Assembly: GCA_002269645.1 (NCBI GenBank)
Contig: NIVC01000665.1
Location: 310,001 to 374,000 of the forward strand
Source of the DNA: Macrostomum lignano
Taxonomy: Eukaryota
Reading direction: 5' to 3'
DNA: 64,000 nucleotides
Shown here: positions 1 through 44,422 of the stretch, one piece after another
Layout: every line of letters starts with the position of its first letter
Position numbering within the stretch: the stretch's first letter is position 1
Translations under genes and position numbers: made by a program
Notes under the pieces: model-generated
Told to the model about the DNA's origin: nothing
What the model saw: only the letters and a program-made list of their open reading frames with translations
Databases searched by the model: none

Positions 1-25
1 AAAGATGCGCGAACCCGTTCTCCAG

Positions 26-3000
26 ACGGCACCATCCGAGCCGTGGCGAGCGTCATCCGCGACCGGGTTGGCGGTGACCAGCTGGCCAGGCAGTTCGGCA
101 GCAGCCTGGGCATCGGGCTCACCCACTGCAGGTTCGCCGGACGGCCCTGCTCGCTGCTCAACTTCCAGACGATGCTCCATCCTCAGCTGGGCGCCTGCCA
201 CTGGTTCAACAAGTCGAACTTTGCCGAGCTTCTGTCCACTAGCAAGGCCACGGATGCTCGTCTGACGTTCAGCTACTTCACGGACTCAACTGACACCTAT
301 GGAAGCCAGTTCGCCAACATGAGCAAGACGGCCGCCATCCTGAACTCGGGGCTGCTGGAGTCAGGCGATGCCGAGAGTGCCATGCGGGTGAGACGGCTGT
401 GGAATATGCGAGCACAATGCCATCGAATTGAGAGTGCATCCTGCACTTACCACATGTAGATAGACTGGGCCTTTTGCTAGCTAATGATACTACTATTCTT
501 CAGGGGTCTGTTCAGAGTTTTTTGCACATACTTATTGCAAAGCGCCATCTCTGAGCTCTCATTGGCCACGAGCTTTGTCTATGGCCAAATCCGACAGATC
601 TTGACGCTTCTTTATTGCATCGATGTAAATTGTACAAATATCGCATATTGCCTGTCCAAAGTCTCAAAATCAAGTTTTATGAAGTCTATTTTAATCTAAT
701 GTCAATCTAATCTAATCTAATCTACGAATCTAATCTCAGTCTAATCTAATATAATCTAATCTAGTCTAATCTAATCTAATCTAATCTAATCTAATCTAAT
801 CTAATCTAATCTAATCTAATCTCATCTAATCTCAGTATAGTCTAATCTAATCTAATCTAATCTCATCAAATGTCAATCTAAGCTCAGTCTAATCTACTAA
901 TATAATCTAATCTAATCTAATCTAATCTAATCTAATCTAATCTAATCTACTAATCTAATCTAATCTAATCTAATCTAATCTATTCTAGTCTCAGTATAGT
1001 CTAATCTAATATAATCAAATCTCATCAAATCTCAATTTAATCTAATCTAATCAAATCTCATCAAATGTCAATCTAATCTAATCCATTTGAACCTCATCTC
1101 ATTCAGGTGGCATTCGTGCCCACAGGCCAGTACCCGCGCCTCTCCGACACGGTGGCGGTGAGCCCCGGCCAGCACGCGGAGCTGAAGCTGCGCTATGACC
1201 GCAGCGTCCGGTACCCGAAGCCCCCCGGCCAGCCGTGCGCCCGGACTCTGCCGGCGGTCAGCTACGCCCTGCCCACCTGGAACACTAGCTGGAAATATGT
1301 TGCTCGACTGCCATGGTGATTGACATGATTCAGCAGCTGTCATAGTGTGCACTATTGCAATAGTTTTGCCTTTAGAACGGTGGAATCTGAGTTTATGACA
1401 ATGACCACATGGTTTTACATAGACACTGCACATAGCAAAATGACTTAAGGTACATAGAGAAATATTAATTTTCAGTAGTTGAAGCAAAACTAAAAGATGT
1501 GAGTCACAAGCTTGAGCAGTCAGTTCTAGATTCTTCTTCTTCTTCTTCATCAGTTCTAGATGTAGACATAGGGCCTGTCTGTGCGCCTACTTTCCAATAT
1601 TTTTCTTCAAGTTTCTTGAAAATTGGTCCGTCGTTCGCGCAGGGACACCTCAATCAACCTGGCCATGCTGTACTCAACACCAAATTGGATTGATAAAATC
1701 GAAATTCTGAAGACGATCTTGGCTGCGAAGGAGACTGGCACGTGAGTGAAAGAAATGATTTTATAGTGAATGAGTTTTTTAGCACTAAAATCACAATATC
1801 TCTCCCCTTCTGGAATTTTGAACTACAAACTGAACAAGTGTCTCTCCTGTCTGATCCCTTAGCTACCTATGACTTAGCTGCAGGGGGGTTCCGGGCATCC
1901 GGATGCAGCGAGGAGGCGTTGGCGCTCATTCCGCTAATCCCTGGCGACCACGGGCAGCTGGTGCTGCGGTGTCGCGCATGAAGATCTGTGGTGCTGGTGC
2001 CAGCAGCGTCGTCCCCCTCCGGAGAGTCCAGGAGGTGGATGTTCGCTCGCCCGGTAGCTCTTAGGTAGCGGACGAGCTGGCAGAGATTCTCGGGCCTGAA
2101 AACGTCAGAAAGGTCCGGGTTTGGGCCGAAGTAGGTGAGCCTGTCCCGTTTAATCCGAGTGGTGACAACAGGGGTGGGGGTTGGGACCTTCGTCGGCACC
2201 TGACGCTTCTGGCCAATGCGTGGAGTCCGATCTGGCATTCGCAGAGTTGCCGGCACCCTACTCAGAGGCGGCAGATGAGGCGGCTTCCGCTTCCGCTGTT
2301 GTTCTGTCGGCTTAATTCCTGGAAGCGAGCGATGCTTTAGACCTTGATACAGGCCTGGATGTGGAGATCGGGCAGACTCAAGGGCACCAGAACAAGTTCC
2401 AGTGCTGCAAAATGTCCACTTGTTCCAGCGCGTTCCAGCAGCATCAAGGGACGCGGTGGTTGTACGTTGGTTACTAAATAGATCGCCAAAAAGTAGATGT
2501 GGGCAAGGTGAGAGACTAATGGGCTGTAAACCCAAGCCCAACTGCCAGCCAAAAATTAGGACCGAGAAACTCCCCGGTTGAGAGCCCAGCTAAAGGTCCA
2601 TCAACGCGGTGCTACACTCGGCCCCTTGAGAGAGACTAGGAGGCTGTCACCGGAGCCTACGGACTGGCCGCATACCCGTTAAGCTCAGAGGTTACCTGCT
2701 CCTCAGAGCCGTTGCTAAAGCTACCTGATGCGCACAGATGCATTTCCGGGTAGAACCAGTTCCCAACACGGCCAAGACAGAGAAGCCGAGACCCCGGATG
2801 GGAGCCCCCAGTCAGTCCAGCAGTCCTAGAGCTGCCTGTAAAAAATGCTCGGCTTTGAGAAAGTTCTCCTACCATTCCTGCACCGGATCGATGGCGGTGC
2901 AGGTGTGTAGCATTGCAAACCTTAACTCGTAAGCCTGGTCTAGGCGTACTGAGCCCACCGTGGGTCAGTTAGTATTTGTTTTCTTTTTTGTTTAACATAG

Positions 3001-4091
3001 CTAAAAAGTTAGCCAAATGATAAACAAATGCTTTGACCTGCATGTACAGAACTGAGCAAAGCGATTGATCTTTAAGATACCTTTGAACTACAAAATTCCC
3101 CAACTCAACCAACATCCTCACGCTCAGCCGTCCCACTGGCGACTCCGTTCGATTCGAATCGGCCACTCAGGAAGACTGCATCTTCGCCTACAAAGTGCGC
3201 CAGTTTCTCAACCAGTGCGGCTGCCTGCCCTCCTTCCTGCCCATCCCAGTGGAGCTGAAGACCAGCGGGCGAGCGTTCTGCTTCGGCGAGCCGGCGGCCA
3301 GCTTCGGAGGCGCCGAGCAGCTGGACAAGTTGGAGCTGTGCGTCAGGGAGCAGATCCGCCTGCAGGCGCGTCACGAGCGGGACGCCAGGCGCTCCGAGTG
3401 TCCGCCACCCTGCGAGACTCGCGCCTACTCGCTGCGCCAGGCCGCCTACCCGTGGCCGGGCCTGACCACCGAGAATGCGCACAGATTCCTCATGGGCAGC
3501 CTGGGCGGCTGGTCCTATCCCTACAACTTCCTGCGGTCTCGTGGCATTGCAAGCCTCTACTATGCCTACCTGAGGTCCTACGACTATTCTGTGCTCAATA
3601 AGAGAGTGTACGATGCCTTCCATATGCAGACCTTTGATCAGGAGGTGCGCATGGTGGAAAGGCGACTAGTCAAGGCCACGGTGCAGGCGGCCAGCGACTT
3701 TGGACAGGATGTCACCGAGGAGCCGTCCTACACCATCAAGAACCTCATGGCAGACCTGGGAGGTGAGTCTGGCTCTGGCGACAAAGTTCCTGGGGGTTCG
3801 AAGCCACATAAATTTGCAGTCTGCTTTTACTTGCTAGATTTATTGTAAACACTCAAAACATTTCAACCCGCTGCCGCAGGCGCCCTCGGCCTCTGGTCGG
3901 GCGTCTCAGTCCTGACCGTGTGCGAGCTGATCGAGCTGGCTGCCCGCATCATCGCTCTCGCCGTCCATCGCCGTTTTCACCGAGGCGTGACGGCGACCTC
4001 GCTGTATCAGCAGTCAGCTGAGGCCAGCAGGCCAGCAGCCAACGAAGATAAAAAAGAGCTTGGCTCTTCGACAGCTGATGAGAGAGTTTAA
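26..4091 (+). CDS. DEG/ENaC (amiloride-sensitive Na+ channel / ASIC superfamily) paralog A, 3' part; the 5' exons lie upstream of the window
   Basis: Exons 26-387, 1107-1315, 3128-3762 and 3880-4091 have GT-AG boundaries and consistent phases (1/0/2/1). They encode HCRFAGRPC...GACHWFN (palm), a Cys-rich thumb (QCGCLP...CPPPCET) and TM2 [26 protein letters not shown], ending in TAA at 4089-4091. Confidence 0.92.
697..1085. repeat. (TCTAA)n pentanucleotide microsatellite in a gene A intron
   Basis: Direct reading of the sequence. Confidence 0.95.
1860..2150 (-). mobile_element. 3' fragment of a non-LTR retrotransposon
   Basis: DRLTYFGPN...[15 protein letters not shown] plus the downstream 3' UTR are shared with 27690-28015. 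Confidence 0.6.
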
Positions 4092-8122: not shown

Positions 8123-11100
8123 ATGTCCGAGAGGAGCAACGAAGCATCTGACGGTAGCGGCCTTCGCAGCTACCTGAATGAGTTCTGCAACTACACCACC
8201 GCCCACGGACTGGGCAGATTCGGGGCCCAGGCCAGCAACTTCGGCAGAACCCTGTGGCTCTGCTTCCTGCTGGGCACCTACGGCGGGTTCACCTACCACA
8301 TGTACACTCTGGGCCTGCAGTTCGCCAGCGTGCCGCTCTCCACCAGCCTGTCCACCTCGCTGCCGTTCGAGTTTCCCGACGTGTACTTCTGTCCCACCGA
8401 CACTGTGACCATGAGCCGAGCCAGTCCTCAGGTGGACATCTTTTCCCTGACCCGGCGGATCACCTGCGACTCCGACTGCAAGCGACAGATGAAGTTCGAC
8501 GTTTTCAGATCGGACGCCGTTCAGTACGGCGTGCCCGCCGTGGAGCTGCTGGATGCGATTACGGCTGTGGAAGAGAACGTGACTGATGCACTGCATTATG
8601 ACAACACCTGTAAGTGTGCATTGAGTAGATAACAGAAGTGCACTCTTTGCCTTTCGGAAGGCCTGGAAGGAGGTCTTCATCGGCAGCGGCAGTGCTCAAG
8701 CCCAAATCATGCACATGAAATAAGATATAATGAAAATACGAAGTAAGAAATAATGGACACGAGGATTCCTGAACCATAGACAACTAAACTCGAAGGACGC
8801 AACACTCGAAAATAGTTCAGAATTCGCTGGAGACTGGTTTTCGCTGCAAATTCGATTTGCAGATTGCAAATGAAGCCAGTGTTGTACGAGGTTCTTGTAG
8901 TTTCTGCTACCGTCCGCAGACGGGGTGATCGGGGTTTCGGGTACTGCATGGACTGTCCAGAGCCTGCCGAGTGTGATAGGAGGGGACCCCTAGGCGCACA
9001 AACACTGCGGGGCGGAAGTGGATGGGCCGGGAGCGTACTGACACTCCTACAATCCTACAAGAGGGAGGTGAGATCCGGGCAAGGGCCGTGCGCGCGCATA
9101 AACACTGCAGCACTCAGTGAAAGCGGGGGCTGGGTGGAGCTAAGCCACGCGGGCTGGGGGAGGGGGCAAAACTCACAGAGTTGAAGGGCGAAAGAGAGAG
9201 AGGGGGAAGCCAATCCAAAGACATGATTGGACTGGCCCAAACCAGAGAGGAACTGAAAGGGGCAGCCAATTTAAGTACAAACTACGAGAAATCTTAAACG
9301 AAAACAAGAATGGCAACTTCAGACAGGGGCAGTCTAGAATGAGCCAGCGGCAGGGAGAGGAGAGGCGGAGAGCGCAAGGGTCGGGCTATAAGGGCATTGT
9401 GAAGCGCAGCTGACAACACAAGTATGAGTTTCATTTGAGACACGTTCGTTGCTGTTTCATCATGCCATCTTGGACAACTTCAGAGATTCGCAGACTGCCT
9501 GAAAAGTCATTTTTTTCAAAAAACTTCCGACTGGTAATTTTCGTCCAGGCTTGTCCCGAACAGTGGGGGAAAGCATCAGGAGTGTTTAGTAGTCCCTGAG
9601 TGCGGGTTTCTGTGTCGGTACACGGGGTTTACGTCAGAACTCGGGACGGGACCTAGTCCGGGGCCTGGCGGTCTTTATTTTTATCAAATTCGACCCCTCT
9701 TCCGTTGCAGTGCCTTTGAACGTGTGCCGAATAACTCCGGGTGGAGAAGAGTACCGCGGCAACCTGTCCCGGGTGCCCGTGTTTGATGCTTCCATCATTG
9801 TTACAAAAATAAAAATGTACTTTCTGTTTTTTTATTATACACATTTCCAGTGGAAAGACCAGCCGCCCCATGTGAGCTACAGCGACTGCATCGGCTGGAA
9901 TGAGGCCGCCAGGGAGCTGCAGGCGGCCGGACTGCACCAGCTGGCTGGCAGAATCCTCGCCGCTGGCTTCGCCGACAGCCACCGAAGCTGCAGGCAGCCG
10001 CCCGGCCTGCCGCTCACCGCCTTCCACAACAATGCGACGCGTGAGTGGCCAAGAAATGGCATTTTAAAAGTTCTACTTGTATCACGGATATGATAATAAA
10101 TAGATTGGTACGTAGTTCAGTTGAAGCATTTTAATGTTCTTTCGGACATGACGGTGCTCCTGAACAGACATAGAGCAACTCAGGCTCACAAAATCCAAGC
10201 CAACGTTTTCCTGCGCACCTTCTCAAAGAAGAACCAAGACGCCAGCCCTTCAGAACGTCGAGATATTCAACGATCCACCCAGACACTTGAATTTTTCCAT
10301 AAGCGCCTGTGCGTATCTCACTGCTGGGTATCCTCAACGAAGTTCACAAGAATTCAGTCATCCCCCAAAGCTTTCGGTGTTTCAGCAGACGACACCAGGT
10401 GACAAAGTTTGAGTATCCGAGTATTAGGCTAACTCGTTGAATATCTCGACGGTCCGGAGGGCTGGTGACTTGATTCTTGCTTAGGAAGGTGCGCAGCAAA
10501 AAGTTGACTCAAGTGTCCTCAAATTTCGTGCGTCTTAGTTCCGTGCGGCGCAGCAATAAAAAGGGCAATTCCTCCTTTGAATGAAAACTCACATTCCTAC
10601 CTTCCAGCTTAACCCCTCCAATCCCAGCCTCACCGCCCAATCTTCATTGTCTGCTTCGGTGTTCCAGCCTCAAGCCTCCTTGCATATTTTTAGTTGTGCT
10701 GTCTGACGTACTCAAAAATTACGTACAGCTTCACTAATATATTTTAGTCTCGCTAAGATATTTACCGGTACTTCTCGTCAACAATAGCTCACGCATTATT
10801 CCTTGCTACTGAATTGAAAGCAGATTTCTGCAACCGGGTGTTCAAATGCAGGTCCGCTGCAAAATTACGTCGGTTGCTGGCCCGCAAGCGACGCACGAGG
10901 CACAGGGCTGCGGCAGCACAAGTGCCTGAGCGGCTTCATGTTTGACCAGCTCCGGCTCGGCCTGTGCGCCGAGTGCTGCTACAACGCTGCCTACAGCTAC
11001 ATGAGCCTGCTGGCTGGCGACACCTGCTACTGCGGCAACGAGCTGCCTGGCAACGACAGCCTCAAGCAGAAGAACTCTGCCTGCGGAGTTCGCTGCCCAG

Positions 11101-14100
11101 GAGATGCTAAGGAGATCTGCGGAGGCGAGAGCGCGCTCAGCGTCTATCTGGTGCGGAGTCCGGGTGAGCGTCACGAGTGCGTTTGTGCAATCAAGGTGCA
11201 GCGCGCCAAATGAAAACGACCTTCCATCGATTAAAATCGTGTCACTCTTTTCAAGACATTTTAAGTTGGAGATTAAGTAGTCCTGCTAAGCTTTCCTGAA
11301 TCATTTCATATTCTGTATGTGCGTGGCATTTATCGCTCATTTGCTAAGGCTGAGCTGCAATTCGCCCTGTCGGCTGTGATGTTAGCTGTCACACCTGAGC
11401 ACCTTACAGCGGCGTATCTAGTCCTACAGAAGACACTTGCGCAATGCACCCTATGCACATGTGATAGTCAATTACAATACGAGCGTAGTTTTTCAATGCA
11501 TTCGATGCTCTGGCATGCGCAGGCATTGATTAACTTTATTATTTCGATTTCTCACCTGCAGACCCCAAGCCTCTGTTCATCCCGTTCAGCCCCGCATTAG
11601 ACAGCCTCAGTGTCGGGCCCTACTGCTTCTACAGGGCCGCTGGGGGCCGCCTGGCTGCCACCTACTGCAATGTGCCTTACTGCCGTGAGCACCGCTGTTT
11701 TTACCTGGGAATTTGTTAATTTTTCAGTCATTACAGTTACAACTTCTCAGTGTATAAAATTAGCAATACAATTACGAGCAATAAGTTTTCAGCAGTATTT
11801 TCAACAATTTTTGTAATCGACTCAACAATCCTTATATTAATAGCATTTCACACAACCGAGGATTGCTGCCCATTCCGCCGACTCCCCTGAGCAGGCAAAC
11901 AAGCGCGCGGCTACGTACGCAGTCATACGCACAGGCAAATACTAACAAAGGAGTGTAAATGGGCCCTAACTTTATTTATCGTTAGGCATGTAAACTTCCC
12001 TGAGCCTTGGGGTTGGTCATTAAGGGCGTTAATTGCACGAGCAGAGCCAAGCCGAGAATTCAATTTAGCCTCGTCGTAGTCGTAGTGTGACTGTACTTGG
12101 GACTTGCATTGTTTTTACTTCATGACTTGTTTTCCGCATTCCCACAGCCATTTCCTCATCTTTCGACTGTCTATCCAGCAGCAACGATGGCTCCATCAGC
12201 GATTCGCAGTACCTTCGCTACACCGGCCACAGGTCCAAGACCAAGACTCGCGACAACTGCCTCAACTGGTCGGATTTAGAAACCACATTTTTAGGCCAGT
12301 GGAATTCTTTCAAATTAAGTTTCAGATTGCTTTCCTACGATGTGAGAATGAGTAAGTTTTTATTGCAAGACGTGTTCAGAAAAAATAATTAGAGTGCCTA
12401 CTTGCAGTGCGCACTAGAAATGTATAAAGTGACTTTAGAAAAACTCTGCGCCACTGGAGGTTTTCTGCAAGAAACCACCGGGAAAAAACAACCTCGTCTA
12501 CAAAAACACAAAAACCAACAACCACCACAATCAGTGCTGGGCGCCGCCGAAGCAGGTCACTTGGGTCAGGTCAGCGTGACGGTTGAGTGCGGCGTTGGTG
12601 ACTCAATCGTCAACTTATTAGCGTTTCAAAGCTGAGATAATAACACTTTACAAGCGGTACACAGTTATGCACCCAGCGGGTCAGGAGTATTTCAATCTAT
12701 TTCAGTTACTCTCCAACTCAACTAAACTCAATGGACAGAAATTTTATTATACAGCAAAGCCACAAAAACTTTACAACTTTCGCAGTTGAAATAAAAAAAG
12801 TGTACGTTGAGACTCCGGACTACAGCTTGTACACGAACAAGACGGGAAACTTCTGCCGGGCTGCCAGAGTGGTTATTGATGCCTTCGTCTATAAGACCGG
12901 CAGATCTGATGGGTACTACTTTATGTAAGTATTGACGGGCGTTCTTGGAGTAGCGCGATTGTCAGTAGAGGTTCCCAATCCAGACTCAACTGTCGTTTTG
13001 AGCACACAGAATCCAGATATGAAGGTCTAAGATCTAAGATCTAGAACTCAAGGACTACTTAACAACTCAGGACGCTACACTCGCGAATGGTAGAAATTCT
13101 AGAAAAGGCCGCTTGCTTTAGCTGTGTCTATGGCAATGAAGCCTTTTCACTAACATTCTTTCATATTCTCAATGCTTGTTCAGACCAGCACTGCTGGTTT
13201 GTAGCAATAATTTGTTTCGTCTAAAATCTTGATAAATAGCAACACTCTTTTTCATCAAAATGCCAATGAAGTGCTGCATCCCTGGATGCAGAAGCAATTA
13301 TAAGAGCGGTGAAAAATGCACTGTTTTTGGCTTTCCAAAGGAAGAAGCTGAAGCTGAGGCATGGCTCCATGCGTTGCCTGTGCAAATTAAGGTAATTTAT
13401 GTAGCCTTTTGAACCTAATTTTTCGTTTCTACTATAAAGATACTTATATTAACTGAATTGTGATGATCATTCCATTCTATCTGTAGAAGGCTAGCATCTA
13501 CATGGGAATCTGCAAAAATCACTGGCCTGAAAATGCACCACTGAAACGAATTAACCGCCATACACGCCCCATCGACCACCCCTCAATCTTTAAAGATTTT
13601 TCATTGACTTCCCTGCGTCAGACTGTCTCAAGTAAGTATGAATGGTTGTGTACTTAGTTTACTTACTAAGTTGTATCAGCCTGTTTCAAATATTTTAGGA
13701 CGCTCTAGAGATGCTGGTCGGCGAGGCGTGCTGTTAGTCGACAGAGCTAGGGCCCCTGATGAATTGACTGCCTTCAATGCTCTCTTTACTACACTTTACT
13801 ACACTTTACTTTACTACATTTGTGGCTACGTTTCACACAAAGAAAATTTGCCTGACCGAGCAATTGCAACAAGTTTGCCTGGTCTGGATACTTCCACTGC
13901 TTGTAGTGAGTTCACCACGCTTGTATCTCGAGGGAAACTGAGCCATCCGCCTGAATGGTTAGTTGTCTTTGCCTGCTTCTGTTATGCCCACTCTATTGGT
14001 TCTGGGCAGCGTTGTGTTAACAGTTCCGTGCTTGTATTTGAGAAAATCTTCGAAATTTTTTTTGATGTTCAACTGGACCGAGATCTGCTGCGTGGAGTGT

Positions 14101-17100
14101 CTCGAAGACTGGCCAACTCCATCTATAAAGGCATGGTGCGCAGAGATTCCGAGACGTCCAGACAATCAACCACCGTTTGCTCTCGCCGACTCCGCAAACT
14201 GAAGCCTAGCTGAATGTTTCTTTCAAACACCTGTATATTTTCAAACTTTGTTATAGCCATCTGTTTTCCTTATACAGTTATGTACGGAGTTTTCCGGTTC
14301 GTTGCATATCGTACTTTTCAATTGTCATTTACAATTCTTATGCTGGGAATATTTGCATATATTTATTGTTTGTATAACTGTAAAAATAATTATTATAGCG
14401 CAAAACTTTTATAATTATCTATCACTTAGTACTTGCTTCTTTATCCAAAAGGCTTATTAAAAAACCATAGACACAGCTAAAGCAAGCGGCCTTTTCTAGA
14501 ATTTCTACCATTCGCGAGTGTAGCGTCCTGAGTTGTTAAGTAGTCCTTGCTAGAACTAAGATCTAGATCTAAGATCTGGTCTAAGATCTAGAACTAGAAA
14601 TTCGAACAGGAAGCAGAGCTCTGTCACCAGCAATTTTCTTTACAACATTTAAGGCCATTAAATTTTCTTTAAGTAAGACCTTGCCCGAGTAAGTCTAAAG
14701 AGACAAAATTGCGAATCTGCTTGCTTAGATTAGTTGAATTTTCCACACTCCATACCAATAATAATAATAAATTGAATCCGCGTTAATGGGCAGATGTGCA
14801 ACCAACAGCTCAGCCGCAGCTATTGCCGGCGAATCTGAAGGCTGCATGCGGCTGTTGAGTCCAAGGACTGGAGGGTCGCCACACACACCCTTAATTACCC
14901 CTGCTGTTGGCTACTATTTTACAGCTGGGTGAACTGAAGCAATGCAGAGTTAAATTTCCTGCTCAATGACACCAATTATTTCGAATCTGTAGAGAATCGA
15001 TCTCCCGACCGTTCAGTCGTGAAACCGACGCTTTAACCACTAGGCTAGGACGCCCCTATTACATTCAATACATTTCTTAATTTTATACCAATATTTAATA
15101 GCTTTACATGTCTTTTTTGCTTCATTGGATGCACGAGACTTCATTATTTTAAAAAATTGCGAAAGTCACAAGTTCCCCACACACCCAGCCGTCACCAGAT
15201 TGTCAAATCCGATACTCCTGTCTGCTTCGTCATGATCAACCAGAGAAGTGCGATCCTGGGCGCCTGCAGAGTGGACGCCTGCTGTGAGTGACTTTATTGA
15301 TTTAATTTGCTAGAAAGGCGGGATTCCATTCAAGGTTGATCGATACAAGTCTTTTCAAGCCAATTCAAGGTCGTTACAAGCCTTTAAATCTTCATGAATT
15401 TAGTGAGTATTCAGTAAGGCGCTGGGCACTGCCGCAAATCAAGGAGACAGCCAGAGTGAAGGCAAGCATTCATGACCGTACCCCGTGACCCCTGAGCACG
15501 CACACGCTCACACAGGGTGCACAGCAGCCCTGACTGTCTAATCGTCTCGCAGTATTAACAATCTGTTCCTTGGGGTTGGCTCACGGAATCAAATCTGGGT
15601 ACTCTGGCGCGAGAGTCAGACACGGTACTGAGCTACTGAACTACTGAGCCCCAAAGCTCATGGCTAGGTTCAAAGCCTTATTCAATTTCGTGATTGATTC
15701 GAACTGATCCTGAGACGCTGCCGCAACCAAAATCTCTTACGCCAGCCCGAGTGACGCAGAGCATCCCCGGCCTGGTGCGGGACCAGGTGGGCAACGCCCT
15801 GCTGGCCAGCCGGTTCGGCAGCAGCATCGGCATCGGCTTCACTGGCTGCTCTTTCGGCAACCAGGCCTGTACAATGGAGGACTTCACCACCCTGCTGCAC
15901 CCGGAGCTCGGACTGTGCCACCGGTTCAACCAGGAAAAGTTCGTCGGGCTCACCAAAGATCTCAAGGCCACGGAATCGTTGCTGTCTTTTAATTACTTCA
16001 CCGACTCTACAGACTCCAAGGGCCGGCGGCTGCCCGGTCTGAGCCGGATGGCCAAAGTGATTTTTCCCGGACTGGTCGACGCGAATGACGACACGCTGAG
16101 CGCCATGAAGGCAAGAACTTTGTCCCAAAACTTGCGGCAAACTTGCGTAAGCCGCTTAAATAGTACTGCCTGAATAGAGATATAAAAATATTGTAAGAGC
16201 CGAGAATTTAGAGTCAACTCACGAAGTATATTTGGCATGCACGATAACTGGGGAGCGATTATAATAGTCCGCGATAGAAAGGTTATAAAAGGACTCACCC
16301 AACTGGGGTGGTGGCATGCACAGAGTAAAGCGAGATGCAAGTGTTGTAACCCGGGTCGGTTTGGGTGCCCAGTCCCGAGTACAATATATATTATACGTAA
16401 GATACAGGCGTAGTGACGCTCTGTCTGTACTTTTATGGATACGAGCAGGCGTGCGACGCTCTGCGATAATAGTTCGATCCCTCTGGTGTTGTGACACTCA
16501 GAGTTCACGCTGCGGCTCGGGGTGTGGTGACACTCTCGAGTGCTTCTAGTCTCAATACTTTAGGTTGTACACACTATATAGAGTAGACGGTACAATACTA
16601 CAAAAAGCTATATGATCTCCCGGCGTTATGACGCTCTGGCAAGAACTCGGCCTAACAAGCTCCCAGAAAAGAACGAACTCAAGCAGCAGGCGGCTTACCA
16701 GTGGCCAAATCGCCGTTACGTTTATTGATTCGCTCGTGCAGGTTCTAACTTCCAAGATTCTTCTCAAGGCTCTTCTGTTTCTTTTCTCGTATTCAATAGC
16801 TAGAATTGCTGTTTAACGGTCTAGTCTCGCACTTGTACTCTCCGAGCACACCAATTCAAAACACAAAACAGCACGAACAGAACAAACAGAACAAACAGAG
16901 CAAACAGAGCAAACCGAGCGAAGGGCGTGAGCAAGGCCCAGAGCCGCATTAAATAATAATCAAACCCTGGGGCAGATGGCCCCACCGGCTAAGCCCAACC
17001 AAACAAGCTACCCCAACAAAATAGAGACTGACCGCGCCGGCCAGCCAATCAAAACCCCGCCTAGGGGGGAGGGGCCGCACCCGCGCCAAAGCTGGCCCGG

Positions 17101-18864
17101 CCGCAGCCAACCAGCCCTGAGCACGGGGCAGGGGCACGGCTGGGGAGGGGCAAGCGCAAAGCCCGGCCGGCGGCCAGACCCTGCCACGCCCGCCAACCCC
17201 CCCCCCCCAACCAGACCCAAAGTGCAACGCGCCCTGCCAACTGACAGAGCAGCCCCACCCCAACTCCACAAATCAAACGCAACCTCACAATATTAACGAA
17301 CTAGACTAGAAATGGTGGGCAGGGCGCTCATGACTCAGAAAATGGAGTATAGAGCGAGAAAAAACGTTTCCGCAATAGCAAGTAACTACAACAGGGGCTT
17401 ATGGTTTGTTCCAGACCAGTTACTTCCAATTGAAATGAATAATGGCAGCCCGAAACCCTCCAGGTGATTCTGGTTCCTAAGGGCCAGTTTCCCTGGCGAG
17501 AAAACGCCATCACCGCCAGCCCGGGCCAGCACCTGCAGCTGAACATTCGCTTCGACAAGCTGAACAGGTATTCGAAGCCTCCAACGCAGGAGTGCCGTCC
17601 GCCCGCGGGGCCCACAGTCTACCGGATTCCCTCGTGGCGCACCAGCTGGAACTACTCAAGTCCTGAGTTGTGAGCTTGAATTTTCTGTTTAGCATTGCAC
17701 AGCCTTTGAACTGACAAGCAGAGCAAAAACGTCTTGAATTAAAATCTCCAGAGATTCATTCAATATGACGACTACAATTTCCTCACTGAACTGGTCAGCA
17801 AAGCTCCAGACTTTACGAGACCGGCTGAGGACTGTAAATAGCAGCATGTAAGTTCCTCTCTTGCAGGGCATTGCTGCTCTCAGCTTTCGCTTTGCCCTTT
17901 TCTGCTTAAACTTATTCCATTGCGACTTGCAGCAGTCCGATGAGCGAAAACTTGACATTCGAGATGCAAGATCAGCGCGACTGCGTCAACCTGTATGCGG
18001 TGAAGAAGTTCATCGAACACTGCGGCTGTCTGCCCTCGTTTCTTCCTGTTCCGGTGCAGCTCTTCCAGAACTACACCTACTGCTTCAACCAGACAGACAT
18101 GGAGAGCATCAAGAGGATGGAGAAGTGTTACACAGAGCGAATGAGCTCAATATCGCGTTACGAAATGGAAGCCCGCCAGGTCTGCCTAACGATGTGCAAC
18201 ACTCACTTCTACACTTTCCGACCCATCACCTACCCGTGGCCCGGCCTGACCATCGAGACAGCGGTGGACTTCATGCAGAACAGCCAAGGGGACTGGTCCT
18301 ACCCCTACAACTTCCTGTTCTCCAAAGGCATCGCGAATCTGTTCTACCTGGACATCCGGAGTAGCGAAATGTACAACCGCTCAACGATGCTCTCGGCCTC
18401 TGAGCTGCTCGATTTTAGAAACAAGCTGGAAGTTTTGCAGGAGAGCCTGGTCAAGGTGTCAATCAAGCCGGTCAGCGACTTCGGACAGGAGATGACGGAA
18501 GAGCCTTCTTACACCATCAAGAATCTGCTGGCCGACCTTGGCGGTGAGCATTTCAAAGCTACCGTGTTATGCTGTCATTTGCAGTTCCGAACAATGGCTA
18601 ATATGTAAGCATTTTTTAGGCGCTCTCGGTCTCTGGTCCGGCATCTCAGTTCTCACCGCGTGTGAGCTGATTGAGCTGCTGGTCTACCTGGTGGCAGCGA
18701 CTCGACGTACAGAGCAGCCCGCCCAGCCGCCAGGGCCTGCGACTGGCAACGCTGAGCAGCAAGACAGCGGCGAGATGAAAGCTGACGACTCAGCCACTCA
18801 GGTTGAAATGACAGACAAAATGACAGACATTGCAGCACCTGAGGTCTCCATCTCGGTTCATTGA
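8123..18864 (+). CDS. DEG/ENaC paralog B with an extracellular Kringle(WSC)-Kringle insertion, about 1038 aa (1021 aa if 9800-9850 is an intron)
   Basis: Exons 8123-8609, 9711-10040, 10852-11163, 11562-11684, 12148-12351, 12786-12924, 15189-15283, 15746-16110, 17464-17669, 17933-18543 and 18620-18864 total 3117 nt and all phases join. N-terminal TTAHG (HG motif), TM1, FPDVYFC, palm GCSFGNQAC...GLCHRFN, thumb HCGCLP, and TM2 [26 protein letters not shown]. Confidence 0.9.
9711..10040 (+). other. Kringle 1, N-terminal half (gene B exon 2)
   Basis: CRITPGGEEYRGNLS...DCIGWNE...HRSCRQPPG matches kringle C1-x-G-x-x-YRG, C2-x-x-W and C3-R-N-P. Confidence 0.8.
10852..11163 (+). other. WSC domain (gene B exon 3, 312 nt, phase 1-1)
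   Basis: YVGCW...LCAECCYNAAYSYMSLLAGDTCYCGN...ACGVRCPGDAKEICGGESALSVY matches the WSC consensus (GC...CxxxC...CxCGN...CxxxCxGDxxxxCGG...xVY). Confidence 0.9.
11562..11684 (+). other. Kringle 1, C-terminal half (gene B exon 4)
   Basis: GPYCFYRAAGGRLAATYCNVPYC matches the kringle GPWCY...YCxIPxC motif (C4-C6). The exon is absent from the ORF track in this frame. Confidence 0.82.
11850..12100 (-). mobile_element. SINE family 1, partial copy
   Basis: Shares ctgcccattccgccgactcccctgagcagg...gttaggcatgta...gcacgagcagagccaagccgag with 7119-7464. Confidence 0.75.
13049..14549 (+). mobile_element. Internally deleted P-element-family (THAP9-like) DNA transposon in an intron of gene B
   Basis: Perfect TIRs of about 85 bp (CAAGGACTACTTAAC... 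/ ...GTTAAGTAGTCCTTG), an exact 8-bp TSD CTAGAACT (13041-13048 and 14550-14557), CA...TG termini, and internal THAP and P-transposase C-terminal motifs. Confidence 0.9.
13260..14213 (+). CDS. THAP domain fused to a P-element transposase C-terminal region (263 aa, no catalytic core)
   Basis: Exons 13260-13391, 13487-13631 and 13699-14213 total 792 nt and are in frame. MPMKCCIPGCRSNY...VFGFPK...WLHAL...ICKNHW...HPSIF is a THAP C2CH signature. LYYICGYVSHK and SRGKLSHPP resemble the P/THAP9 C-terminal YIxGY and RGGLxxPS motifs. Confidence 0.75.
14757..15056 (-). mobile_element. SINE family 2 copy
   Basis: Reverse-complement match to 5800-6108, with an (ATA)n tail. Confidence 0.75.
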
Positions 18865-22725: not shown

Positions 22726-25700
22726 TTAAACACAATCGGAAATCGAGACTGGGTTCTCGTGCTCACTCTGCCGGGGTGCGCCGTTCTCTGACACTCGGGT
22801 GTGACCGAGCTTCTGCTGCAGAGCGATGGCCAGGTACACCAACAGCTCTATCAGCTCGCATGCCGTCAGGACCGACACCCCCGACCACAGACCGAGAGCA
22901 CCTGGTGGATGGGGAACAGATGATGTCAATTTTTCCCCAGCCCTTGCATCAGAGCAAGTCACAGCCTAAAATTTTTAACCAAGCACAGATGAGCTCGGCT
23001 ACAGACACGTGCACACTGCGCCCTGGGGTCGTCCTTACGTGAATCGAAATTTTCGTGTACCAGACATTGGCATGGGAGTCTAAAGCGTAAACAACTGAGC
23101 CAAAACAGCCGGTCTAGTTATTGAGACATGAATATTTTGGAATACCGTGACTGACTGACACAATTTGACTTCTATCAATTTGACTGCCGATAACATTTGA
23201 CTACCGACGATTTAGGTCAGGTCTAGGGTTAGAATTGGGGTCAGCAGTCAACTCGCTGCAGTCAATTGTCGTAGACTCATCCATTGTAAGGAGCTGAGTC
23301 ACTTGATCTCTATTTGCCCATACATTTCCCAAACTAAATCTATACCAGGTGGCTTGTTGCAACTCTTCTGACTTACCGCCTAAATCAGCCAATAGGTTCT
23401 TGCTTGTGTACGAAGGCTCCTCCTTGATCTCCTGACCGTACAGACTCGAAGCCTGCACAGTAACTCTGACAAAGTTTTTTTCAATCAGACTGAGATTTTC
23501 TGTGAGCTCCTTGACGGCCGTTGCCTTGTTAATACTGCCGTCTACAGAGGTGTCCATCTGGCTCACCAGTCTGGAGAAATAGTGCAGTCCAAATAGAGTT
23601 GAAATCCCCTCGGAGCCGAGAAAGTTGTTCGGATAATTCCAATCGAAGAGGTGGCTCTGGAAGAAATCGTGAGCATTCAGCGTGGATATCTCTGGCCACC
23701 GATAGCTGGCCAGCTTCACAGAGTAGCTGCGAGTTTCGCACAGGGGGACGCAGGCTTGGCGAGCGCTTTTCTGCAGTGAGGCCAGCTGTTCAATGTGGCT
23801 CTGGTAGCACTGCTCCACTGAGCCAATGCCCTCTAGCGAGGTCACATTGAAGCACTGTTTGACCTCGGGCGGGAATGCGCCCACTCGGACAGGCAGGAAC
23901 AGCGGGAGGCAGCTGCAGTTCTCAAGGAATCGGCGCGCAACGAACTCGTCTATGCAGTCGTCCACAGTGCTGGCTGCGAATCGCATGGTCGGGCTGATTG
24001 CCGATCTGAAACCGGTTAAAGATTGGCTCAGTAATGAAAAATTCCAGGACATTTTTGGTTATAAATTTTTCTGAAATCGATCACATAGATTCGTATAGGA
24101 CTAGTATATAGGACTAGCAAGCAGCGAAAATTCTTTACTTTTGACACAAGATCGACCTAAATTTGCGATGCTTAACAAATCTCTCGATCGATTTTTGTTG
24201 ACAACCGTTTGATTTTAGCTAGCAAAAGTAGCTGAATTAATATGCAAAGGGGATGTCAACTTAAGCACCAGAATGGAGCCCGAAGTTCAGCTCCGGCCCA
24301 AACCGACTGCAATCGATAACTTGTCGGGCCAGACGACTAGAATCGCCGAGACATCCCATCCGGCTCCCTTCCTTGGGGTCCCAGGGGATAAAGGGGATAA
24401 AATGGCGATTCTAGTCGTCTGGGCCGACAAGTTATCGATTGCAGTCGGTTTGGGCCGGAGCTGAACTTCGGGCTTCATTCTGGTGCTTAAGTTGACATCC
24501 CCTTTGTTTTTTAGAGTTTCTTTACAGCTATAGGGCGAGTATTTCAGTAGCTAAGTGAAAGCTCTAATATTTTAGAAGTCTACTTTTCAAAGACGCACCT
24601 TCCGTTGGTTTGTCCTTCGAGCATTTCACGAAGCAGATCCGTCCTCTCCATCCAATCGGAGGCTGATTGAAATGCTGTATAGTTCACATTCTCTCTGTAA
24701 TTCGTTTTGTAGCATTTCTGGAGTAATCCTTTGGAAGTAGTTGAAAAATAGATATTGGCAGGAGGGCTGCAAGCCCCGACGTGGCACAACTCTATCGACG
24801 AATTGTACAGCCAGCGGGGAGGCAATTCTGCCATTCGCCAATACTGTACGCATAGGGTGTACACCCGCCCTGACTCTAATCGTCAGGTATGTGCACTATC
24901 TGTGGCCTGAACTTGATGACTGAGAGCAGGGGGCCGTAGCCCAGCGGTCTAGCGCAGGTTCTGGTGTGCCAGCGACCCAGGCTCGATTCCAAGTGCAGTC
25001 ACATTAATTTGGGGCTGAATTGGAATCTCGGCTTGGCTCTGCTCGTGCAATTAACGGCTTTGACAGCCAACCCCCCAAGGCGCAGTGAAGTGTACATGCC
25101 TAACGATAATATAAAGTTAGGGCCGCTGTACACTCCTGTGTGAGTGTGTGCCTGCGTACGTATCCGCGCGCTTGTATGCCTGCTCAGGGGAGTCGGCGGA
25201 ATGGGCAGTAATGCCTCTCGCCGGTTGTGTGCCTATGTCGCTTAAAGTGCGCCAGGGTGCACAAAATCCCCTGCCTCTAATAAAAAAAAGATGATCGAGA
25301 GCAATGGGCACCGCAGCTCACCTTCTATTCTTATCAAACAGCCGAAGCGAGGACTTCCAATTCGGCAGAACGTATTCCACAGGCTGGGCCGAGGCAGCGC
25401 ATTCTTTACCGGTCAGCTTCGAGTATCGAACGGTTCGATCGTATCGGATCATGAGCCTCATGTGCTGGCCAGGACCCACGGTGACTGTGTCTTGAGGCCT
25501 GGGATATTGCCCCGGTGGCACTATAATCACCTGTAGATATAGAAATAGTTGTGCTATTGACTGGATTTTACTGGGGATTGAGCTTAATAATGTCAGGTTT
25601 CTTGCATGCAGCAGTAGTCTTTCTATTATTGCTTTCATTTCAGCTCACTTGTCCCAACGGGTCAACAAAGAAGTAAAAGAAAATTAAAATGACCCGCAAT

Positions 25701-28700
25701 TTATTCATTTTGAATAGTCCTTGATAAAAATGACCTGACTACATCCTGGGTTATATCGAAGATAAATGTGTTTAAAAGTTTTTTTGAATTTTACTGACCT
25801 TCATCGCTACTTTCTCGTCAGCTTCCAGTGCCCAGTGCGAAAGCGCGTTAGTCAGGAGTTTCGTGCCAGCGAACTGGCGGCCGCGACTGTCCGTCGCATC
25901 CGTGAAGTAGTTAATCACGAGTTCTGTGTCGTCGACATTAGAAGATTCTGAGTTAATTAACCTGGCTCCGCCCTGATTGAACCGATGGCAGACGCCCAGA
26001 TTCGGATGATGCAGTGTTGTGAAGTTTTCCATGCGGCAGCGGCGACGACCGAGGCGGCAACCGCTGAGTCCGATGCCCAGGTTGCTGCCGAACCTGCTGA
26101 GTAGCAGCTCGGCTCCAACTCGGCTCATTACAACAGAATACTGACAGCCGAGAACATTGTCTGCATAAATAGTTTTTAATGGAACATTAAGTCTGAAAGC
26201 TATCTGAGCCCAACCTAAACTCACTACGGAGAATGTCTTAGGCTACCTTAGAATTTCCTAAATCGAAGTCTTCCTGCCTAAAAGTGCAAGAAACTGCTAA
26301 AAGCGCATTTTTAGCTAAGAGACGATAGAGAGCAGAAATGGGAGACAAGAGAGGAGAGGAGAAGAGATGAGACGAGAGAGAGAGGGGAGAGAGAATATGG
26401 GAGAGAGAAACGAGAAGAGAGTGGAGAGATTAGAGAGGAGAGATGAGAGATCGTTTCAAAAGCCCCAAATTATAATGTTGTACACCGATCCGAATCCAAT
26501 GTACTTTTATTTTCAGTCGTTGCCCCAGCGTTTAATTTATTTGTCTGTGTCACAAGCAGCTACCGACTGACTCTATTAAGGCTTGCCTCGACTTATATCG
26601 TTCTAAACAAAATATAAATGCAACTTAAGCCACGCTCTTCGGCTCAACGCAGTGTCAACGCATAAAACGCAACATTCAATTTATCACGAATTTACTCTAA
26701 GCTTTTTTACCTCTATCCTAACTTAACGACTACTAGACACTAAGTGTTCGTAGTAGTCCTTGTTCTAACTACTCGTATTCACAAGTTTTTGTCGTAGCAT
26801 GGCTTCAGATTTAAGGTACAAAGAAAAACAAAACATTTGTTGTGCAATCGTGCCCTTTCTCGCCCTCCTGCCCCGCCCCAACCCTCCAGTCTGCCCCACC
26901 CCTCCAATCAATAATCAATGCGTACGCCGATCACGCCACCCCGCCCCACCTCCCCTGCTGTACCGTACATTTGTTCTTAAGGTATATTCATGTACGCGTA
27001 GGACCAATGAAAAATATATAGTCGCTGTCTGGAGGGCAGACTCCTCCCTTGCGCGCGTTGGTCCGCCTCCGTTGGCTATTGACTAAAACGACTCGTCGAT
27101 CTACCATAAAAAGTGCACGGCGAACTGCATCGGCTACGGTGTGTAAGTTCGTGTTCGCGATTTACTGTCCTTTTTCTGCTTCTCCCTAGGGCGCGGGACG
27201 GGAGCTCTGACTGGGGACCTGGGGGTCGCAGCTTCCCGACAGGTTAAAGCTGTAGGCGTTGCTCCGGAGGACGGGGCTCACAACACATTAGAAATAGTAG
27301 AAATACTTTAGAAATAGTTCCGGGGATTGAAATTCAAGCGGGTAAAATACCCGAGGGTTTCAACAGCTTGTCTTTTATAAGATCCCGGGTTTACGCTCTG
27401 TCCCGCTAAAAAAGCAATGGCAGCTGCTGACTGGCCTTGCAGCAACCCTCCTGGCTTACAGCAGAGCGGAATGCTGCAGTGTCCGATGCGGGCCTCGCCA
27501 GACTTTGCATAGGCGCAAGCAGCGCTGGAGAACTCGTGGATCTTGCGGCTGAAATGAAAAAATACAACTTCTGCTTAACGATATTTAACAGATGCACGGT
27601 GGGGATCGACTCCCTCGTTAGGCCGGTTCGATTCTGTGTGGGTGTTAGCAAAGCCGTGGTTGCACAAAGCCAGCCGTGATCCTGCCTCCCCGGTGTTGAG
27701 AATGCGGAGCACTTCATCTGTGAATGCCCGTTCTTTACTCAGGACAGGCTCACCTACTTCGGCCCAAACTCGTACCCTTGGAAATTTTCAGGCCCGAGAA
27801 TCTCTGCCAGCTCGTCCGCTACCTAAGGGCTATCAAGCGAGCGACCACCCCCTCCTGGACTCTCCGAAGGGGGACCACGCTGCTGTCACCGGCACCTCCG
27901 GATCTCCCTGCGCGACACCGCAGCACGAGCTGCCCGTGGTCCCCAGGGGTTAGCGTAATGGGCGTCGACGCCTCCCCGCTGCATCCAGATGCCCGCAGCC
28001 ACCTGCGCCTGAGTCAAGTCCAACAACCATTCTCTAAGTTTTTATTAGAGGCAGGGGGCTTTGTGCACCATAACACACTTTAGGCGACATTGTCACACAA
28101 CCGGCAAGAGATTACTGCCATTCCGCCGACTCCCCTGAGCAGGCACACAAGCGTGTGGATACGTACGCAGTCATACGCACAGGCACACACTCACACAGGA
28201 GTGTACAGTGGCCCAGACTTTATTTATCGTTAGGCATGTACACTTCACTGTGCTTTGGGGGTCGGCCCTCAAGGGCGTCAATTGCAGGAGCAGACCCGAG
28301 CTAAGATTTCAGTTAAGTCCCAGATAAATGTGAAATTTGAAATCGAGCCTGGGCTATAGAATTTGTATAGACATGAATACGCCGAATAAAAAAATCAACT
28401 TTCACCTTTCAACTTTCAACTATCACCCATCGATCGAAATGAGTTTGGCTGAAGCTGCAACCATTTTCTACATTGTTGTTTGACCCAAAACTTGTCTGGA
28501 CAGGGTCCTGAGATTTGCTGTCTTTTTTAATATAGTCTGTGGACTGTACCATAGTTTGGAAGACTTTGAAATCACATGTAAGAGTACATTCCCGACTCGC
28601 ATGTAAGAGTACACCCCCGACTCACATGTAAGAGTACACTCCCCGACTCACATGTAAGAGTACACTCCCGACTCGCATGTAAGAGTACACTCCCCGACTC

Positions 28701-42100: not shown

Positions 42101-43600
42101 GTCTCCGCTGACACCAGCGCCAGGATGGTGGCGCACTCTGATCGGCAGGCGGCGCCGCGGCTTGTGTAGAGTACGTTGGTTCGAATCTTGTCGAACACCT
42201 GCTTGCAGTTGGTGACTAGGTCTCTGTCGGTGCGAGGAGGTGGGGAGTGTGGAGTCAGGCTTCAGTAGGAGGTCATGGGCTCGATTTCTGGTATAGGACA
42301 CGCAATCAGATTTTAGGTTCTTGTATGGGAGCCGCTACCCTTCCTCAGGGATGCTTCAGTGGGAGCCGCTACCCTTCCTCAGGGATGCTTCAGTGGGAGC
42401 CGTTACCCTTCCTCAGGGATGCTTCAGTGGGAGCCGCTACCCTTCCTCAGGGATGCTTCAGTGGGAGCCGCTACCCTTCCTCAGGGATGCTTCAGTGGGA
42501 GCCGCTACCCTTCTCTCAGGGATGCTTCAGTGGGAGCCGCTACCCTTCCTCAGGGATGCTTCAGTGGGAGCCGCTACCCTTCCTCAGGGATGCTTCAGTG
42601 GGAGCCGCTACCCTTCCTCAGGGATGCTTCAGTGGGAGCCGCTACCCTTCTCTCAGGGATGCTTCAGTGGGAGCCGCTACCCTTCCTCAGGGATGCTTCA
42701 GTGGGAGCCGCTACCCTTCCTCAGGGATGCTTCAGTGGGAGCCGCTACCCTTCCTCACGGGCGACCGAAAAGTAAAAAATGTCACCTGGTATGGCCCAGC
42801 AGAACTTCTTGCAGATAGGCTGTGAAATGTGACGTCACCGGCTGAGTGAGAATCACCACCTGGATAAGCCGGAAGTAGGTGTCAACAGCCCGACGCCCGG
42901 CGGACACGGCGCCATCCGGCCCGGGCTCCTCGGCCATGTAGTGTCGGACATTGCGCATGATTCTATGGTGAAACTCGGCCTCCTCCTCGTACTGTAGCGG
43001 ATCGGCGACGCCCTCGGGCAGACCGTCGTTGCCGGCCAGCAGGCAGAGCCGAATGAACTCAACAACAGGTATGAGGCGGCACACGTCAACAAAGGGATTC
43101 TTTTTGGCGTAGTGCGTGTCGTGATTGACAAAGTCAACAAATGGCGGCATTTTGATTCGGCCATCGACAATGTCCCGCATGACGTTGGGCTGCGTGCAGT
43201 AGGCGAACGCCTTCTGCGCTTCGCTCTTCACCGTCTCGTCGCTAGAGTGAGATGGGGGATAGGGATGGCTTTTTCTGGTGATTTTCCGCTAGCGCCTGCA
43301 AGTTAAGCAGGGTTGGCCGCGGTTAGAACTAGATTTTAGCGCCAACTTAGCATTCAAAATTCTAGGGGGGGGGGGGTAAATGACCCCCACGACCTATTTG
43401 CCCTACATGTTCGCACATTTCAGTGACTCTGGCTAATGTACATTACGTCTGCACTAATAGCAAGTTGTTAATAATCTGCGAGTCAGTACTAACACTGCCA
43501 TTCTTTCATATAATAGCTAACAAATTCTTTCTTACTACTGAACTCAAAGTAGAAAAACTTCTACTGAAAGTAGATAACACAGGCAGCCTATTCAGCTTGC

Positions 43601-43671
<71 letters not shown>

Positions 43672-44135
43672 ACTCGTCGCCCAGTCCCTGCAGGATGATG
43701 TAGCGAGACGGTATATGATCCTTCGGATAGATGACGTCAGCAAAGTGGATGACCACCTGACGACAGGCCGCGTCGTTTTTCTCGATATTCTCAAACAGCA
43801 GGGCCTCCATCAGCGAGCCGGATAGCCAGGTGCCAACGAAGATGGGGGCCATGGCGTTCAGGCAGGTGCGAACGGCCATTTTAACGTCTCCAGTTTCGTC
43901 AGAGAGAGACTGGAACAGCTCCTGCAGCAGGGCCAGGCCGTTGGCCGCGAACTCCGGACTCTTTGGCACCATGTTGCCGAATGCGATGAACGCCTTGGCC
44001 TTCAGGCTGGCGTCCTGCGCGGAGAATGTAGGGGGGAGGGTGTTCCCATGAGCAGCCAGTCATGCATATTTCGCTGGCAAATCCCCATCTGTCTGTCTGT
44101 CTGTCTATCTGTGTGTCTGTCTGTCTGTCTATCTG

Positions 44136-44188
<53 letters not shown>

Positions 44189-44191
44189 GTG

Positions 44192-44222
<31 letters not shown>

Positions 44223-44233
44223 GTCTATCTGTG

Positions 44234-44266
<33 letters not shown>

Positions 44267-44305
44267 GTGTGTCTGTCTGTCTGTCTGTCTGTGTGTCTGT
44301 CTGTG

Positions 44306-44340
<35 letters not shown>

Positions 44341-44361
44341 GTGTCTGTCTGTCTATCTGTG

Positions 44362-44422
<61 letters not shown>

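Follow-up and report, generated by a model that had tools for sequence, protein, structure and literature searches.

A WSC domain nested within a split, kringle-derived module in the finger region of a DEG/ENaC channel family of Macrostomum lignano

Kringle and WSC domains occur side by side in the receptors Kremen1/2 (Kringle-WSC-CUB), where they are packed as an extracellular binding unit. The same two module types are described here in an ion channel gene, gene B, located in a stretch of 64,000 nt from the flatworm Macrostomum lignano (contig NIVC01000665.1, positions 310,001-374,000 of the forward strand, assembly GCA_002269645.1) that was analyzed as a whole and is referred to as the window. 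In Kremen, the domains follow one another, as a preliminary description of the locus had pointed out, and the kringle is uninterrupted (C32-C114, C55-C95, C84-C109; PMC5014086), whereas in gene B the WSC domain lies between the third (C3) and the fourth (C4) of the six Cys of a kringle. Kremen is, moreover, a type I single-pass receptor with a CUB domain, while gene B is predicted to encode an ion channel subunit with two transmembrane segments (TM1 and TM2) in which Pfam finds no CUB domain. The WSC exon of gene B encodes 10 Cys, as compared with 8 in the WSC domain of Kremen1 (PMC5014086). The lack of a CUB domain and the different topology rule out that gene B is an ortholog of Kremen.

Classical kringles (those of plasminogen, tPA, HGF, prothrombin, and ROR1/2) share with the interrupted kringle of gene B, termed kringle 1 (K1), the order of the six Cys and the motifs C-x-x-G-x-x-Y-x-G, C-x-x-W, C-R-x-P, G-P-[WY]-C-[FY], and C-x-[IV]-P-x-C. 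K1 differs from them in the ~140-residue interruption between C3 and C4, in a longer C1-C2 loop, in a predicted helical C2-C3 stretch, in a Tyr that replaces the Trp before C4, and in the sequence CRQPPGL, which lacks the two Asp of CRNPDxD. These Asp residues belong to the lysine-binding centre of kringles, and classical lysine binding by K1 is therefore unlikely. Domains nested in small disulfide-bonded modules are familiar from laminin, where L4 lies inside an LE module, and from integrin beta, where the nesting (PSI > hybrid > beta-I) is three levels deep. In both of these, disulfides bridge the insertion, and the host and guest folds differ from kringle and WSC. To the best of the authors' knowledge, a kringle has not been reported as the host of a nested domain; the literature searched likewise returned nothing on such a host, nothing linking kringle or WSC domains to DEG/ENaC channels, and nothing on the nesting of one of these domains in the other. 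Elaborations of the DEG/ENaC finger include the protease-sensitive segment of ENaC, the extracellular regulatory and Cys-rich domains of MEC-4, and the peptide site of FaNaC. Like the modules of gene B, these are regulatory additions, particular to each family, to the variable finger region that separates the first palm strands from the beta-ball, but they consist of family-specific sequence, with no recognisable mobile modules and no domain within a domain. The arrangement in gene B represents known phenomena, namely domain insertion by exon shuffling and elaboration of the DEG/ENaC finger, in a variant that is unusual for kringles and for ion channels. WSC and kringle domains also occur within one extracellular protein of the lophotrochozoan Mytilus galloprovincialis (LOC143076337; P0021), a mussel, which, unlike gene B, is not a channel and carries the domains in tandem: a contiguous canonical kringle at residues 555-624 (profile E 2e-25) comes after six WSC repeats. 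This combination outside Kremen could be connected with the origin of the modules that were shuffled.

The DNA of the window is eukaryotic and rich in introns, and the spliced gene B peptide matches only M. lignano proteins in UniRef (97-100% identity). Three DEG/ENaC paralogs are adjacent in the window: gene A (1-3960, +), which is truncated by the window start such that its kringle/WSC part falls outside; gene B (8123-18864, +), which is complete; and gene C (~22800-31564, -), which is convergent with gene B. The gene B model was assembled from blocks conserved with the two neighbouring paralogs, public fragment models, and a reading of splice sites; it comprises 12 exons, its introns are all GT-AG, and it encodes an uninterrupted open reading frame (ORF) of 1031 amino acids. 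Public M. lignano models in UniRef (P0001 and P0002) share its junctions around K1 and the WSC exon. Searched against Pfam, the native protein yields ASC (135.8 bits, E 3e-39), one WSC (E 3.8e-11), and no other family. Assignment to the DEG/ENaC family (PF00858, ASC) is supported by this score (cutoff 23.6), by the presence of TM1 and TM2, and by the motifs TAHGL (pre-TM1 HG motif) and SGISVLT (TM2 GxS motif), and the protein aligns with FaNaC, ASIC5, and ENaC. Exon 1, which ends in phase 1 at a GTAAGT donor, aligns with residues 66-151 of FaNaC and 37-115 of ASIC5; the assignment of the last four exons rests on the ASC score and on the FaNaC and ASIC5 alignments. Residues 16-99 of gene B are aligned with the segment of FaNaC and ASIC5 that spans pre-TM1, TM1, and the first palm strand (beta1), and residues 573-602 align to their conserved C.F..C..F..C.FN segment; between the two, ~470 residues of gene B stand where the FaNaC and ASIC5 structures have 58-69. 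Following the architecture of ASIC, this interval is taken to be the finger region. By sequence, genes B and C are subunits of a M. lignano-specific DEG/ENaC subfamily with predicted channel activity, and their finger region is enlarged by ~400 residues that comprise K1, the WSC domain nested in the C3-C4 loop of K1, and a second kringle (K2). The three-level order of channel finger, kringle, and WSC put forward in the preliminary description is, on the FaNaC and ASIC5 alignments, a fair account of the protein.

The pieces of K1, the intervening WSC exon, and the corresponding pieces of related genes are compiled in Table 1. All splice junctions of the K1-WSC segment are canonical, with AG preceding and GT following each coding piece, and K1 is both entered and exited in phase 1. 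The distance from C3 to C4 is ~140 residues, with the WSC domain lying between, and K1 does not form the contiguous stretch of ~80 residues that defines a kringle. The WSC exon matches Pfam WSC (PF01822) over profile positions 1-82 of 82 (47.9 bits, cutoff 27.8, E 1.6e-12), and its sequence match in the Protein Data Bank (PDB) is yeast Wsc1 (7pz2). The peptides and the complete 104-codon WSC exon that had been reported between CRNP-like and GPWC-like motifs were thereby located in gene B as described. The single "exon 2" (9711-10040) of that description does hold C1-C3, but it contains a stretch of 72 nt (9779-9850) that is spliced out in one public model (P0002) and kept in another (P0003). 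The first codons of this stretch (VFDASII) resemble paralog coding sequence, with similar residues (VPVY/VPVF) present in paralogs, and the K1 region that corresponds to 9711-10040 is a single exon in gene C and in two further paralogs located on other contigs in the same assembly (loci L001 and L002). The stretch may be an intron that arose recently out of coding sequence, or else an intron that is retained; either status leaves the finding of a nested domain unaffected.

Table 1. Positions and exon structure of K1, the WSC exon, K2, and the flanking channel exons in gene B, with the equivalent exons of gene C and of two paralog loci on other contigs (positions are those of the window).
Feature	Positions	Strand	Description
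Gene B exon 1	8123-8609	+	Cytoplasmic N-terminus with FCNYTTAHGL (HG) motif, TM1, first palm strand PFEFPDVYFCP, start of finger
Gene B K1, first coding piece	9711-9778	+	C1 in CRITPGGEEYRG; EEYRG motif (canonical YRG); entered in phase 1
Gene B, 72-nt stretch within K1	9779-9850	+	In frame, stop-free, GTGTTT...CAG; status uncertain
Gene B K1, second piece	9851-10040	+	C2 (CIGWNE), helix-predicted stretch, C3 (SCRQPPG), conserved GLPLxxF linker; ends in phase 1
Gene B WSC exon	10852-11163	+	312 nt, 104 codons, symmetrical phase 1-1, 10 Cys; flanking introns phase 1
Gene B K1, C half	11562-11684	+	123 nt, phase 1-1; putatively structured linker, GPYCF (C4), TYCNVPYC (C5, C6); flanking introns phase 1
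Gene B K2	12148-15283	+	Exons 12148-12351, 12786-12924, 15189-15283
Gene B, rest of DEG/ENaC extracellular domain, TM2, and C-terminus	15746-18864	+	Exons 15746-16146, 17449-17669, 17933-18543, 18620-18864
Gene C K1, N half (C1-C3)	29853-30155	-	One exon of 303 nt, entered and left in phase 1; C2-C3 part shares 73% identity with gene B
Gene C WSC exon	29463-29777	-	315 nt, phase 1-1; Pfam WSC E 1.5e-9; flanking introns phase 1
Gene C K1, C half (C4-C6)	29267-29392	-	126 nt, phase 1-1; flanking introns phase 1
Locus L001			WSC exon 312 nt; K1 C-half exon 123 nt; flanking introns phase 1
Locus L002			WSC exon 300 nt; K1 C-half exon 123 nt; flanking introns phase 1

The kringle character of K1 became apparent in profile searches when the whole insert, i.e., the WSC exon together with its linkers, was removed and CRxPPGL was joined to xxGPYC. 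Pfam Kringle (PF00051) then aligned to gene B in one stretch across the junction (positions 5-79 of 79, 22.7 bits, E 1.2e-4) and to two paralogs with E-values of 1.4e-5 and 4.6e-4. Kringle was the sole significant family among 24,736 Pfam models, with DUF5746 being non-significant (E 0.28). A profile of seven paralogs prepared in this way gave 68 matches in the PDB at E<10, and all 60 of those listed are kringle chains, including those of HGF, ROR1/2, prothrombin, plasminogen, tPA, neurotrypsin, apo(a), and Kremen1. The best match to a single kringle was ROR2 (E 1e-3), the Kremen1 kringle was matched at E 0.017, and C3-C6 of K1 were in register with the kringles of HGF and ROR2. When K1 was compared by hhalign with a set of canonical kringles (ten sequences, all ten of which were verified as Kringle by Pfam), a probability of 96.2% was obtained (E 2.4e-9, score 51.4) over 75 columns (kringle columns 4-78), with GGEEYRG of K1 falling on columns 4-13. 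Because the excision boundaries were chosen by the analyst, shuffled and separate-half controls were added. Column-shuffled K1 profiles (n = 200) scored 10.7 ± 2.4 with a maximum of 19.9, as compared with the observed 51.4. The halves were also aligned alone, such that no junction was involved: the N half fell on kringle columns 4-30 (score 23.6, shuffle maximum 18.3) and the C half on columns 57-78 (score 29.4, shuffle maximum 15.4), which places the separate halves 6-10 standard deviations (SD) over shuffles. Thus, K1 has the canonical Cys order and motifs and whole-domain homology to canonical kringles. At the level of sequence, the case for a kringle that is interrupted between C3 and C4, as the preliminary description had proposed, is solid.

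The same split is found in related genes. As had been noted previously, gene C carries it in three exons with the same phases (Table 1), and the order in L001 and L002 is likewise a K1 N-half exon that ends in phase 1, a WSC exon in phase 1-1, and a C-half exon in phase 1-1. The six K1 Cys and their flanking motifs are conserved in every aligned paralog (five paralogs in one alignment and six in another), with YxG after C1, CxxW at C2, CRxP at C3, a PWC-like motif at C4, and Cx4C at C5-C6. Across paralogs down to ~34% identity, the K1 Cys are invariant and the WSC Cys are mostly conserved. Since gene C and two loci outside the window, one of which is merely ~34% identical, share the split, the arrangement is ancestral to the channel family; that is, the nesting predates the expansion of the family. 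An artefact of assembly or gene modelling is ruled out by the recurrence of exon order and phases in two genes of the window and two loci on other contigs.

The spatial arrangement of the two domains was examined in an AlphaFold model of the K1-WSC segment of paralog P0004, the closest full-length paralog (53% identical to gene B), which was predicted from a 10-row alignment. The model has a mean predicted local distance difference test (pLDDT) score of 74.7 and a predicted template modelling (pTM) score of 0.69, with the C2-C3 core and first linker at ~90 and the C half at ~85. This pTM, which refers to the segment as a whole, suggests that its parts have a defined mutual arrangement. In Foldseek, the WSC part of the model was similar to Wsc1 7pz2 (TM-score 0.76, root-mean-square deviation 2.7 Å, E 4.8e-5), and it also matched Kremen1 (E 1.6e-4). 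The Cys of the segment are distributed as 3 in the K1 N half, 10 in the WSC domain, and 3 in the K1 C half. If all of these are paired and the ten WSC Cys pair among themselves, then at least one disulfide must join the halves of K1. K1 would assemble as one fold with the canonical 1-6, 2-4, 3-5 disulfide map, a proposal for which the Cys counts and the high pLDDT of both halves are indirect support.

Directly downstream of K1 is K2, a degenerate kringle whose C2-C3 and C3-C4 loops are long. The C3-C4 loop, which in K1 hosts the WSC domain, is in K2 extended by a long insertion and also contains an intron. Unmodified K2 reached 94.9% in hhalign over kringle columns 6-78 (score 46.9, shuffle maximum 19.7), and UniRef names a paralog fragment of K2 "Kringle domain-containing protein." The AlphaFold model of K2 (pLDDT 68) has long beta-hairpins.

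The best overall explanation, to which a probability of roughly 0.8 is assigned, is that the finger of this DEG/ENaC channel carries a WSC domain that was nested in a kringle-derived module by exon shuffling and that the resulting block is a putative binding platform. Exon shuffling among the extracellular proteins of metazoans typically involves class 1-1 modules (PMC8001218), and the proposed course of events is that a class 1-1 WSC exon inserted by this route into a phase-1 intron of K1. The target intron would have lain in the C3-C4 surface loop, which runs from the CRNP-like to the PWC-like motif, and the insertion would have taken place before the paralogs diverged. In Kremen1, the strand order of the WSC sheet is beta1-beta5-beta3-beta4-beta2, which places the terminal strands adjacent to one another (PMC5014086). 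Since the first and last strands are neighbours, a WSC domain is suited to insertion; it would fold independently and the kringle halves would close around it, linked by canonical inter-half disulfides and by the conserved linkers GLPLxxF and PLFxPF, which would be structured.

What such a block would do for the channel can be approached through its relatives. In other DEG/ENaC channels, peptides, proteases, and protons influence gating through the finger. In yeast, according to the title of the 7pz2 entry, the Wsc1 WSC domain is a cell-wall stress sensor, and the kringle and WSC domains of Kremen1 jointly form the Dickkopf-binding face (PMC5014086). By analogy with these roles, the kringle-WSC block would most likely be a platform for binding or tethering that influences gating, and its putative partner an extracellular protein or glycan that, as a ligand or as a tether to the matrix, would gate or modulate the channel. 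A bolder version of this proposal, which is regarded as rather doubtful, is that the kringle-WSC-kringle block is a Kremen-like ligand-binding platform grafted directly onto the channel, in which case an extracellular protein or glycan would gate or tether the channel. Within this version, candidate ligands, which are suggested only tentatively, are a secreted Cys-rich protein or a polysaccharide of the matrix or cuticle, and the channel could change between two sensor states according to whether the in-frame WSC exon is included or skipped. A Kremen-like platform would, if true, be a new gating modality for DEG/ENaC channels that was made by exon shuffling.

Several observations weigh against the interpretation of K1 as a kringle that encloses a WSC domain, and most of them bear on a quite improbable alternative, namely that the WSC flanks are a lineage-specific Cys-rich scaffold that resembles a kringle by convergence or chance. 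First, Pfam makes no kringle call on native gene B, and deletion of the WSC exon alone yields only the C half (Kringle positions 59-79, 13.1 bits, E 0.12). After the same deletion, hhalign also aligns the C half only, phmmer against the PDB yields no match, and a 5-paralog profile matches kringles exclusively, yet at E 0.6-1.6. The preliminary description had anticipated that hidden Markov model (HMM) searches would miss or half-call the kringle, as they do, and had proposed deletion of the exon as a test; that deletion gave the half-call, and a full-length kringle was obtained once the linkers were also removed. Exon-only deletion fails because ~38 conserved linker residues (GLPLxxF..., ...PLFxPF...) remain between C3 and C4, as compared with 11 in kringles. 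Second, the rejoined halves do score as a kringle after removal of the whole insert (Pfam E 1e-4 to 1e-5), but all of these scores (20.9-25.8 bits) are under the gathering cutoff of 34.3, and the excision boundaries were picked so as to restore the canonical C3-C4 spacing. Third, the C2-C3 stretch of K1 is predicted as two helices, unlike in classical kringles, and "kringle-derived" is therefore the safer term for the predicted module. Fourth, the alignments that underlie the structure models are shallow (8-10 rows); in the P0004 model, the kringle was recovered by Foldseek as an 18-column local match only (E 1.5), although Foldseek aligns sequentially and thus cannot join the halves of a discontinuous kringle, and the K2 model (pLDDT 68) returned no kringle and nothing significant, with fragments of RNA polymerase (E ~0.1) as top matches. 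Convergence or chance is nevertheless difficult to reconcile with Kringle as the sole significant Pfam family, with a list of PDB matches in which 60 of 60 are kringle chains, with halves that independently fall on complementary parts of the kringle at 6-10 SD over shuffles, with six Cys in canonical order and register, and with the 94.9% that K2 reaches in hhalign without modification.

A further point on the same side of the balance is that the WSC exon, at 312 nt in phase 1-1, is a multiple of 3 and can be skipped with the reading frame kept. The exon could, in principle, be a facultative cassette that the main isoform skips to yield a plain, long-looped kringle, with the nested protein being minor or non-functional. 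This possibility is given little credence, on a par with that of a Cys-rich scaffold, since the exon is intact, and most of its Cys are retained, even in paralogs with as little as ~34% identity, and public gene models include it. Conservation of the WSC exon in divergent paralogs therefore indicates selection on the included form.

The distribution of the arrangement was explored with a K1-WSC-K2 profile, which was run by HMMER in an exhaustive search against 1.84 billion representative proteins. Among the matches listed (the best 150 of 3,794, such that relatives under ~100 bits may lie below), full-length matches were to M. lignano only, in a protein database that apparently is without other Macrostomum species. 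They include the further paralogs P0009, P0011, and P0061, while the other listed matches that were checked by sequence or name are multi-WSC proteins of fungi, bivalves, and a diplonemid, among them the mussel protein P0021. The suggested search of metazoan proteomes for half-kringle/WSC/half-kringle patterns thus found full-length examples, and those listed are all from M. lignano. A word-indexed search with a WSC-less profile returned three M. lignano fragments; it missed known paralogs as well. The arrangement is not known to have been described before and is, as far as seen, confined to one flatworm lineage. Public records label K1-WSC channel proteins merely "WSC domain-containing" or "amiloride-sensitive sodium channel." It should be noted that the UniRef names of the channel fragments P0002, P0160, and P0165 ("Peptidase_M16_M," "Mab-21," and "GON domain-containing") mismatch their sequences and that full-length members carry just the name "WSC domain-containing."

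Still slightly less credible than a scaffold or a cassette is an origin of the halves from two kringles, in which an ancestral kringle-WSC-kringle protein lost C4-C6 of the first kringle and C1-C3 of the second with no single insertion, for while tandem WSC and kringle domains exist (in Kremen and in the mussel protein) and a second kringle already lies directly downstream in the channel family, this origin requires two precisely complementary deletions, the intermediate forms were not found in the HMMER search among the matches listed, and a symmetrical 1-1 WSC exon lies between phase-1 introns in 4 of 4 genes, as one insertion predicts.

Other features of the window were noted in passing. 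An element of ~250 bp occurs in an intron of gene B (11848-12103) and in introns of gene C (24986-25226 and 28118-28318); the copies are 55-80% identical when translated and are probably a dispersed repeat or transposon fragment. A gene for an ECM29-like proteasome adaptor (Pfam ECM29_N, HEAT_ECM29, and ARM_ECM29) occupies ~36136-47000 (-); its coding blocks are separated by long minisatellites that repeat every 22-34 nt (36816-37465, 38472-38822, 40665-41590, and 42326-42757) and by a 1-kb (TCTG)n array (44088-45085). This gene is followed by a block of ~10 kb (48000-58000) with very low G+C (0.27-0.37 as compared with ~0.5 elsewhere) and without an ORF of >=90 amino acids, which is flanked by a 34-nt minisatellite (58223-58887). 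Toward the window end are exons of a Brix-domain ribosome-biogenesis gene (58996-60344, +) and of a flavin-monooxygenase-like gene (62914-63492, +).

For domain evolution, the locus presents a case in which a mobile class 1-1 exon appears to have landed inside, and not beside, a small disulfide-rich module, with the intron phases still visible. For annotation, it presents a nested domain that hides its host kringle from standard HMM searches. Macrostomum lignano is a transgenic-capable model organism. For the biology of ion channels, a DEG/ENaC finger that bears recognisable binding modules offers a way to discover new ligands or tethers.

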